A DNA stretch of 64,000 nt from Zygnema circumcarinatum SAG 698-1b (taxonomy: Eukaryota > Plantae > Zygnematophyceae). The notes below the pieces were generated by a model that worked only from the letters and a program-made list of their open reading frames with translations, searched no databases and had not been told where the DNA came from. The stretch spans positions 1,200,297-1,264,296 of the forward strand of contig CM074819.1 of assembly GCA_037447605.1 (NCBI GenBank), read 5' to 3'. Below, piece after piece: positions 2,221 through 8,498 of the stretch (the first letter of the stretch is position 1; each line of letters starts with the position of its first letter). Made by a program: the position numbers and the translations under genes.

Positions 2221-5200
2221 ATGGGCCGAAAGAAAATACGGATCGAGAGAATACCAGATGAACGCAATAGGCAGGTTTGTTTTCCTTCTGAATCAAACCT
2301 CAGTTTGGTTTATTGAGGTTGGTCCTACTTTTGCTTGGAGTTTCATTTTCCTTCTTGTGTCCTTTGCAAATCGTGTTGTAGGTGTGATTTGATGGTCATT
2401 TTCTCTCTTCAAATGCCTTCTTCTTGCTGCGTGGGTTCATTCCAAGTGTATTTTTGGACCTGCGGAACAATCTTTGAAACTTTTTCTTTAAGTCATATAA
2501 GGTTTTTCTTTACTTCCACCTTCTGGCCATTCTTGAATTTGTGACAATGCGATTTTGCCAGGCGCGATTCAGTTCCTCTTCCACTCTGCTGTTTCTTGTC
2601 AATTAGTAGTACCATCTGAGCTTTAAATCTCATTCCAACTTTCTAGCTTTGTTTCTGTGCAGGTTACATTTACTAAGCGTAAGAATGGCTTGATGAAGAA
2701 GGCCATGGAACTAAGTGTTTTGTGTGACTGCAAAATCGCATTGCTCATATTCTCCTGCACGGGGAAGCTCTTCCAGTATGCATCTGAGGATGTGGATACC
2801 ATCATCGCTCATGCGAAGGAGAAGCAACAGGAGGCCCAAGAATCGAGGAACAATCGCGATGTATGTTTTTCCTGCTTAAGTCGTTTAATCGATTGGTAAA
2901 AGTTCATCGTTAATGATGTTTCTGGAATGTTGTGCTCAAAAGTAACTGCAAAGCAGTTTTTTCCTTTCTTGTCAACTACTTGAACAGGTATGCCCATTTT
3001 TTCATCTACGTGAATCACATGAATCTGATGACTGATCCTTCTATTTTGGCGGGGTTCCATAGTGCCGTGCCTGAGCCTACTGGCAACTTTTGTTCAGATC
3101 TGTTGGCTTGCATGGCTTAAACCTGGGTTTTGGCAATTGCGGATTTGAGAGTTGATCGTACATCTGCTGTTAGGAATTCAGAGTATAGCTCTGTAATAAA
3201 GTATCTGCAGAGGATGAAAGTGTGGAAAGCTACACATCATCCTGAGACTCGCCGTCGTTCTTGGTGGACTCAATGACTTACGACAGCACTGAGAATGACT
3301 CTTTTTCATATACAGTGTGCGTGCTTGTAAAGGTGAAGCCTTCAAGGTTGGTGAAGGATTTGTCCCTTCAATGCCAACACTAGTTCTGACATTGTCTTTC
3401 CGTTCTTCATCTGTCTTGTGTGCTTCCGCAGCTTTTCAACCAGCACTTTGCAGGGCAGTCTTATACTTCTCGGGAGAGGAATGCCTCTAGTCAGAAGAAA
3501 TCTTCTCGGGTATGTCTAGTCATCAACGCACGGTACTTAACAGCCAGACGTGACATATTCCAGTTGTTCGGTTTTTTCATGTACACAGTATCCTCCCGTC
3601 TTGAACTGAAGTTTGCTCGCTGTGCAGTTCTATGATCCTGATGAAGACGATGAGGATGAGGACGAGATCGATGGTGAGCAAGATTCGGACGGCGAGGAGG
3701 GGGAGGAAGAGGAGGGGGGTAATGTATGTACTCCCCAAAAGGGGATGCCAAGGAAGGCAAGACGAAGTCGACGACGAGCCACTGCATCTCCAAAGAGCAC
3801 AAATCGGAAACTGCCATCCTCGTTGCCCGAAGGGGGGTAAGCTCCATTTTCTTGCTCTCGTATGGCCATTTTCTATGGTGCATTCTTTTTCGAAGTGGTT
3901 GAGAAAGCTTTTGTTTCGTTGAATTTTGCATATTCCGAAATTAATCAATTGCTCAAATTTTGCAATGGCTGTTTTCTCGTATGGGACTTATGTTTCTACT
4001 GGAGGCATTCTTTGCTCTATATTTACAAACTTGTAAAGCCGTTTCAAGAAGAAAAGGCGAGGAATCTCTGCTGCCGTTGTTTATCAATGACCAATTATCT
4101 TTCAATCCGTATAACCCAATCTCGGCTAACCGATCATGGCTTCAGTCTCATAATTATTGCTAACTAGTGGCTCCTGTTGGCAGATTCTTGCATCAACTGA
4201 TGAAAGGAGACGAAGAAGGAATACAGGAGAGCCATTTATCAAAGTCGGGCAGTGCAACCTGTCCTCAAAATCGTCCCTCCAACTTTGGCTTTCTTTCACG
4301 GCTATCGAACATGGAACCCATACAAGATATGGTAATGCTTTTGATTTACTTCAACAGTATCGTCACCACTTCTTTTTTGTATTGTTTGCAATTTCCATAT
4401 TCACGATTGAGCTCCAGGATCTTCTTGCCCTATTGCATAGAACTTCCAATTATTATTGCGCTTCGATCTACGCTAATCCAAAACGCAGTTACTTTGATTC
4501 TAGTGTTCATTCGTTTATCTTGTTACTAATCATGATTTTTTGTTGCTCAAATCTCTCCTTTCCTTTGCCCCCTGTCTGGTGCATGACCAGCCGAGCAGAC
4601 CTGAAGTGGAGCAAGACCCGCCGATGCTTTCTCTACACAGCGCTGAGCCTCTGGTTAGCTCTCACACTTCTCACTCACTTTGCTGCTCTGCAGGATGCTG
4701 TCAGAAAGAAAGCGTCAGCCTGCAGGGGTAAGCCGGGGAGAAATTTGCGGTAAGGTGAATATGGGGGCCTGAAGCAGCAGCGCTGTCAGAACTTCTTTGA
4801 ACTGCTTCTGCTTCATGTTTTTGCTTATGCAGAAAGCAAGGGCATGCCTGGCTGTTTTTCATCGGCGTCATTCTAATGCCTTGTATATAGGTGAGGCGAA
4901 GGAGGGACTGGGAGAACGAGACAGAGAGAGCAAAAGAGGTTTTAATGACTTTCTTTTCCTTTCTCTTTTTTGCAGGCCCCCAACTTGTTTGATCAGGTCG
5001 AGCCAAGCTCTCCCTCTGTTGCCTTGGATGAACCCCTGGGCGGCGTCTCCTTCTCCTTTCCGACCCCCTCCTGGGCTCCCCCGCCAGGTAGCCGACTGCG
5101 ACCCGGAAGGGAAGGTTCCAGGAAGAGATCTGAGGGTGACTTGAATCTCAAGCAAGGGGCCTCCACGCAGCCGCTGCCGTCCCGTGCCTCCTTGCCCCTT

Positions 5201-8200: not shown

Positions 8201-8498
8201 CTCTCCTCTCTCTCTCTCTCTCTCTCTCTCTCTCTCTCTCTCTCTCTCTCTCTCTCCTCTCTCTCTCTCTCTCTCTCTCTCTTTCTCTCTCTCTCGATGT
8301 CTACCTCTCTCTCCCCGTTTCCTGATCATTGTTGTTTGCATGGAACAGGACCAGCTCATGAGTGCTATCACAGACCTCCCATCTGACCATTTGGGAACGC
8401 CTTCAGGGCTGGCTGCCATCTCTCCGTCAGCCTTCACATTCGACTGGACAGCAGGCAGCCCCTGCAAGACGCCCAAGGTGGGCGGTAGCTTTCACTGA
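2221..8498 (+). CDS. MEF2-like: MEF2-type (type II) MADS-box transcription factor with long disordered C-terminus and no evident K domain
   Basis: Exon 2221-2274 encodes [18 protein letters not shown]. Exon 2663-2860 encodes [41 protein letters not shown]...ESRNNRD. Phase-compatible exons follow at 3628-3836 and 4184-4331, with uncertain small exon(s) at ~4590-4750, a long exon 4976-6751 and a last exon 8349-8498 after the (CT)n intron. Confidence 0.9.
6815..8310. repeat. ~1.5 kb imperfect (CT)n microsatellite in the last MADS intron
   Basis: Nearly uninterrupted CT dinucleotides with occasional phase slips, lying between donor AAG|GTGTGA (6752) and acceptor CAG|GAC (8349). Confidence 0.97.

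Follow-up and report, generated by a model that had tools for sequence, protein, structure and literature searches.

The window analyzed here is a stretch of 64,000 nt from the zygnematophycean alga Zygnema circumcarinatum SAG 698-1b (positions 1,200,297 to 1,264,296 of the forward strand of contig CM074819.1, assembly GCA_037447605.1), and the gene in question occupies its positions 2221–8498. The locus is very probably an intact, transcribed type II (MEF2-type) MADS transcription factor gene that lacks a K domain and is orthologous to the K-less genes of chlorophytes, prasinodermophytes, and streptophyte algae. An initial annotation, made from the letters alone, had proposed a retained ancestral MEF2-type factor. 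This proposal holds, because no K domain is present, the best matches and the neighbors in the tree are K-less algal proteins or animal MEF2, and one intron position is shared with them; the view as such, however, is already in print (see below).

A run search found the locus in seven public runs from three studies, all under one organism label. RNA contigs of four public runs (X1–X4; three studies) were mapped to positions 1900–6800, where spliced contigs matched the locus at 99–100% identity in all four. Together, they define nine exons, eight of which are coding. The coding sequence (CDS; 2221–8498) is made up of pieces of 54, 198, 78, 209, 148, 63, 1776, and 150 nt, and its frame is open across the eight coding exons, yielding a protein of 891 residues. 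The joints in the spliced contigs all have GT..AG borders (2059>2218 in the 5′-untranslated region [5′-UTR], 2274>2663, 2860>3432, 3509>3628, 3836>4184, 4331>4591, and 4653>4976). At the last joint (6751>8349), a loose contig end at 6752 continues with sequence from 8350 in four of four runs. An intron at 2060–2217 interrupts the 5′-UTR, and position 8498 is the last base of the stop codon (TGA, 8496–8498) in the final exon, as had been annotated. The exon structure initially proposed, for which RNA data had been called for, is thus backed by joints from four runs of three studies. Because the corresponding joint stems from spliced contigs of all four runs, the intron said to split the MADS box after codon 18 (RNRQ/VTF) is real and in phase 0; it begins with GT at 2275 and ends with AG at 2661–2662. 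Directly 3′ of exon 2 lies GTATGT.

Homology, tree, and fold work was done exon by exon. Exon 2 alone matched the Pfam family SRF-TF (PF00319) with an E-value of 1e-20 (73.3 bits, cut-off 26) and the solved structures of MEF2A–D with an E-value of ∼5e-21 over all of its 66 residues (73–76 bits); the bit scores to other solved MADS proteins were 54 (SEP3), 38 (MCM1), and 34 (SRF). Identity to MEF2A–D was 61–66% over residues 19–84, and the basic residues of the N-terminal arm and of helix 1 are all the same as in MEF2A–D. The sequence ESRNNRD, which had been reported to follow the domain, is indeed found at the end of exon 2. An AlphaFold model, which covers exon 2 only and was computed from a 43-row alignment, reached a predicted local distance difference test score of 88.5 and shows the order helix-strand-strand-helix (H3-20, E26-30, E36-40, and H44-54). 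When this predicted structure was compared using Foldseek, MEF2A–D ranked at the top, with template modeling (TM) scores of 0.76–0.81 over 63–66 columns, the second helix included. SEP3 came next (TM 0.73–0.74 over 53–54 columns), and SRF and MCM1 reached 0.53–0.59 over ∼60 columns, with a root-mean-square deviation of 5–7 Å once the second helix was aligned. SRF/MCM1-type proteins thus have the core MADS helix and the β-hairpin in common with the model, but their second helix cannot be superposed; in the window protein, this helix is predicted to pack as in MEF2, without the SRF-type kink or reversal. Judged by its sequence, the MADS domain is of the MEF2 type (type II) and closer to MEF2 than to SRF or MCM1. 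The residues of MEF2 that we take to form the co-repressor groove (L66, L67, Y69, and T70) are I, A, A, and K in the window protein.

No trace of a K domain was detected. The K-box family (PF01486) did not match any exon in Pfam at E-values up to 10, and a profile constructed from three genuine K-boxes scored negative bits in all three plus-strand frames of 2000–8600. Applied to all proteins fetched, the same profile matched only the four K-box-containing plant proteins, three of which were its sources. Likewise, the C-terminal tail does not contain a proline-free 28-residue window with at least six of eight hydrophobic a/d positions, whereas three real K-boxes, serving as the control, yield 8–12 such heptad windows each. 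The spliced contigs also leave no space for additional exons. The product confirmed by RNA is therefore free of a K domain, whose presence there was one of the two refutations named by the initial annotation.

Its description of an acidic, serine-rich C-terminus of ∼800 residues without a heptad-type K-box was equally accurate. The tail comprises 807 residues (806 counted, the split codon being omitted), with 13.2% serine and 116 aspartate plus glutamate versus 88 lysine plus arginine residues, and its composition suggests that it is disordered. For exon 7 (592 residues), a word-based protein search returned no homologue at an E-value of 1e-3 or below, Pfam gave no credible match, and an Atlas feature search turned up no convincing match (best value 0.80, at a low recognition of 907); exons 5 and 6 did not match any Pfam family. 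A motif in exon 8 resembles residues 477–513 of a K-less protein from Chlorokybus (P0205; E-value 2e-4 with blastp and 6e-4 with phmmer).

The relatives of the window gene are of the same kind. When exon 2 was used in an exhaustive search, 5531 MADS proteins were retrieved, and the 150 best representatives of these include 40 with a green-type sequence (KNGLMKKAM) and 89 with an animal-type one (KRKFGLMKKAY). Members of the green type are found in Chara braunii (GBG75870.1), Chlorokybus (Chlat1/1913), Cymbomonas (KAK3233053), Coccomyxa (the CsubMADS1 kind), Elliptochloris, Myrmecia, Prasinoderma, Pyramimonas, Tetraselmis, Ostreobium, and a pedinophyte, and those scanned contain SRF-TF but no K-box. 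The closest relative is the MMETSP transcript P0011, which is identical to exon 1 throughout (100%, its residues 1–18) and to exon 2 at 70%; exon 1 is 94% identical in Chlorokybus, Cymbomonas, and Pedinophyceae. Over exon 2, identity is 58–70% to the K-less rows of the alignment versus 35–46% to the land-plant rows. Like its green K-less relatives, the window gene has the MADS domain with the MEF2-like helix, RNN.D followed by LF.QHF, an acidic run at the same place, a long tail devoid of recognizable domains, and no K-box. The signatures typical of green K-less proteins (N26, M33, CDC, and RNN.D/LF.QHF) are retained. It differs from them in its length (891 residues versus ∼300–670) and in a more diverged helix-2 region.

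With animal MEF2A–D, the gene shares the first coding exon of 54 nt with its phase-0 intron after RNRQ (shown for a coral) and the ESR.N.D motif, but the animal proteins have F26 and Y33 instead of N26 and M33, and the HJURP_C/LTPRTE region (LTPRTE.KY.KINEEFD.MM) as well as the transactivation domains of the animal type are missing from the window gene. Because ESRNNRD is nearer to the algal E.RNN.D than to the animal ESRTNSD, the gene is to be regarded as algal-style and not specifically as animal/fungal-style. Thus, the MEF2 part of the initial label "animal/fungal-style MEF2" stands, whereas the signature residues are algal and the gene has the normal algal form.

A third conserved block, LTPR[ST]E..(Y/F)..IN.EFD..(M/L), is common to invertebrate MEF2 and a number of K-less MADS proteins from green algae; it is located in P0023 at 292, P0205 at 197, P0165 at 263, P0210 at 181, P0011 at 167, P0245 at 109, P0246 at 111, P0271 at 109, and P0263 at 111. 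In Chlorokybus and Cymbomonas, it appears as weak matches to the Pfam family HJURP_C; HJURP is not mentioned in PMC12447436. Neither HJURP_C nor the block was found in the window gene: the exons gave no HJURP_C match, and a profile of LTPR.E..Y..IN.EFD built from nine instances found nothing in the exons or in any plus-strand frame, although Chara, Chlorokybus, Cymbomonas, Coccomyxa, and P0011 contain this motif. AYSEINQ, seven residues inside intron 4, was considered as a motif-bearing exon and discarded, as its score was at chance level (−4.6 bits, E-value 6.8).

Vertebrate MEF2 genes have a first coding exon of 54 nt and a phase-0 intron after RNRQ. When intron positions were compared, as the initial annotation had suggested, the same phase-0 intron between Q18 and V19 was encountered in MEF2 of the coral Paramuricea and in four green-algal genes (Cymbomonas, Coccomyxa, Ostreobium, and the pedinophyte). 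The next intron, after RNN.D and again in phase 0, is common to the window gene, Cymbomonas, Coccomyxa, Ostreobium, and Myrmecia, whereas the second intron of coral MEF2 lies three codons later. In 22 of the 40 green-type and 61 of the 89 animal-type representatives, the break in the database fragment falls precisely at V19, and in most of these cases an in-frame Q or K contributed by the acceptor site stands before it. In the MADS-evolution papers searched (including bioRxiv 10.1101/2023.02.13.528266, PMC10484287, and PMC12447436) and in a literature-library search, no mention of the shared MADS-box intron was found; its presence in both green-algal and coral MEF2-type genes may therefore be new, if a modest lead.

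We give an even chance to the idea that Q18/V19 is a single ancient intron, which would have been present in a MEF2-type gene before animals and green plants diverged, kept in the K-less algal genes (those of this streptophyte alga included), and lost toward MIKC. If so, gene structure would testify, without recourse to sequence trees, to a direct orthology between the algal K-less genes and animal MEF2, and the intron would mark when the MIKC lineage was remodeled. That introns were instead inserted in parallel, without any signal of orthology, is quite conceivable and only somewhat short of an even bet, as the codons for Gln-Val read CAG/GTN, a canonical proto-splice site, and the second intron is offset by three codons between coral and green algae. 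The region also gains or loses introns. The Chara orthologue has no intron in the MADS box, with residues 1–386 encoded by one exon, and the annotated model of Myrmecia bisecta places the MADS intron at codon 24 in phase 1 (AAAC/GTAAGT...CAG/GC), which could reflect sliding, re-gain, or mis-annotation. In the Chara K-less gene (BFEA01000233.1, 6001–13367), an intron is absent both within and after the MADS box, which suggests intron loss or an origin as a retrocopy. Parallel insertion has to account, however, for the identical position and phase of the intron across a cnidarian, four lineages of chlorophytes or prasinophytes, and a streptophyte alga, and for the fragments ending at V19 in both the green-type and the animal-type sets.

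With respect to the identity of the gene itself, it could be argued that the locus is a derived M-type gene, i.e., a streptophyte MIKC gene that lost its K-box secondarily, as has been proposed for land-plant type I genes. We consider this improbable. The window gene shares the MEF2-type MADS domain with plant MIKC-type genes but has neither the K-box and its heptads nor the M–I intron, its C-terminus is very long, and it retains the green K-less signatures instead of the MIKC pattern (KRRNGLLKKA.ELSVLCDAE). MIKC genes encode the MADS box in their first exon and the I domain in their second (PMC10484287, section 12); here, an intron after codon 18 divides the MADS box, the remainder of which shares one exon with the I/MEF2-like region. 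Furthermore, both intron positions are those of chlorophyte K-less genes, exon 2 is closer to K-less than to land-plant sequences, and the acidic run is placed as in the K-less relatives.

In the maximum likelihood tree (66 exon 2 columns, 51 rows), exon 2 of the window gene is sister to P0011 (89/84) inside an assemblage of K-less and MEF2 sequences; the animal rows fall together in a single starred clade, with the land-plant rows that carry a K-box on the opposite side. Some observations nevertheless weigh against K-less orthology. In the approximately unbiased (AU) test, which used the same 66 columns, a grouping with the land-plant MIKC rows was not rejected (P = 0.33). The branch leading to the window row is long (1.22), and no other member of the green-type set is as diverged in the MEF2-like helix region. 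The MIKC rows in the tree are few and of poor quality, derive from tandem-fused predictions, and include no charophyte MIKC sequence. The missing LTPR.E..Y..IN.EFD block and the deviating gene structures of Chara and Myrmecia point in the same direction. Because the 66-column tree is weak alone, it is signatures, exon structure, and domain content that place the gene among the K-less type II genes. Nesting within MIKC or SRF clades, named at the outset as a refutation, was not seen in either case, but a grouping with MIKC could not be rejected. That the locus might be a copy in decay or without function, or stem from contamination by a non-plant organism, is hardly credible: even though its 592-codon exon is without relatives and its last intron harbors a 1.5-kb microsatellite, the frame is open over 891 codons, splicing is correct at 99–100% identity in four runs from three studies, the DNA-binding residues are fully conserved, and the signature residues are green-type and not animal-type.

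By homology to MEF2A–D, residues 1 to ∼85 would form a dimer binding A/T-rich sites of the CArG/MEF2 type. Without a K domain, a K-mediated tetramer would not be expected, and the protein would presumably act as a dimer. The acidic run in exon 4 is a putative activation region and the basic cluster a putative nuclear localization signal; regulation may reside in the long, presumably disordered, serine-rich tail.

The K-less type II genes are the presumed origin of plant MIKC genes, including the floral homeotic genes, and all plant MADS genes have been derived from the MEF2 type (Qiu et al, PMC10484287). K-less type II genes were described in rhodophytes, glaucophytes, prasinodermophytes, and chlorophytes, and beside MIKC genes in streptophyte algae, with loss in the land-plant stem (Gramzow et al, bioRxiv 10.1101/2023.02.13.528266). 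Another study reported 17 such genes from charophytes; they come from each of the six classes, are nested with those of chlorophytes, and encode long, disordered C-termini (PMC12447436). The retention in streptophyte algae of an ancestral MEF2-like gene lost by land plants is therefore already in the literature, and, the class of ancestral type II genes without K having been published between 2023 and 2025, the window gene is a well-documented example of it and not a discovery. The only relative studied so far, CsubMADS1 of Coccomyxa, has been linked to tolerance of nutrient limitation, with preliminary binding to C(A/T)8G-like CArG sites (bioRxiv 10.64898/2025.12.15.690641). A gene model fully validated by RNA, from an alga closely related to land plants, provides a clean reference for exon structure and domain content, and the argument for orthology could be made sharper by the intron in common with animal MEF2 and by the motifs that the gene shares with Chlorokybus.

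Table 1. Features of the K-less MADS gene in the window (positions refer to the 64,000-nt window).
Feature	Position	Strand	Evidence
5′-UTR exon, spliced to 2218	1901..2059 (5′ end farther upstream)	+	Raw joint 2057>2216 (cut +2), GT..AG, four of four runs
Exon 1: ATG at 2221, codons 1–18, N-terminal arm and start of MADS helix 1	2218..2274	+	RNA joints
Intron 1, phase 0, within the MADS box between Q18 and V19	2275..2662	+	Raw joint 2270>2659 (cut +4), four runs
Exon 2: residues 19–84 (VTFTKRK...QESRNNRD), remaining MADS domain and MEF2-like second helix	2663..2860	+	RNA joints, Pfam, PDB matches
Exon 3: 26 codons, starting with LFNQHFAGQ	3432..3509	+	RNA joints
Exon 4: acidic D/E run, then basic cluster	3628..3836	+	RNA joints, translation
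Intron 4	3837..4183	+	RNA joint 3836>4184; also low-depth unspliced contigs, four of four runs
Exon 5; split codon GG/A (Gly)	4184..4331	+	RNA joints 3836>4184 and 4331>4591
Exon 6: 21 codons	4591..4653	+	RNA joints
Exon 7: 592 codons, Ser/Gly/Gln-rich	4976..6751	+	Continuous contigs 4975–6752 in X2–X4; two contigs with a 44-nt gap in X1
(CT)n microsatellite, 1.5 kb, inside the last intron (6752–8348)	6814..8313	+	Tandem Repeats Finder: 759.5 copies, 94% matches
Exon 8: final 49 codons and stop	8349..8498	+	Loose ends in four runs

Beside the spliced contigs, low-depth unspliced contigs cover introns, and intron 4 is covered in all four runs. If intron 4 is retained, TAA at 3838–3840 ends the frame (open reading frame 3613–3840), and the product of ∼180 residues would contain only the MADS/MEF2 domain, the acidic run, and the basic cluster; these contigs could represent a truncated isoform or simply unprocessed RNA. 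An alternative donor at ∼2984 within intron 2 (2984>3429), observed in X2 only and at a depth of 4, was read as minor, and a joint 3715>6169 with GG..TC borders, present in one contig of X4, was dismissed as an assembly chimera. The (CT)n array is removed by splicing, as evident from the loose end at 6752 that continues at 8350. On the sense strand, this (CT)760 array ends 35 nt before the 3′ splice site of the last intron.

An Rfam scan of the window returned no RNA family. Farther downstream on the plus strand, the open frames at 35376–36092 and 38475–40740 matched Yip1 (2e-07) and PAP2_C (7.6e-07), respectively, and thus correspond to ordinary eukaryotic genes. Simple and tandem repeats are present here as well: CCCTCC/GGGA arrays at 38.6 and 48.9 kb, 20 copies of a 29-mer at 44494–45081, and an (AG)385 array at 52719–53486.

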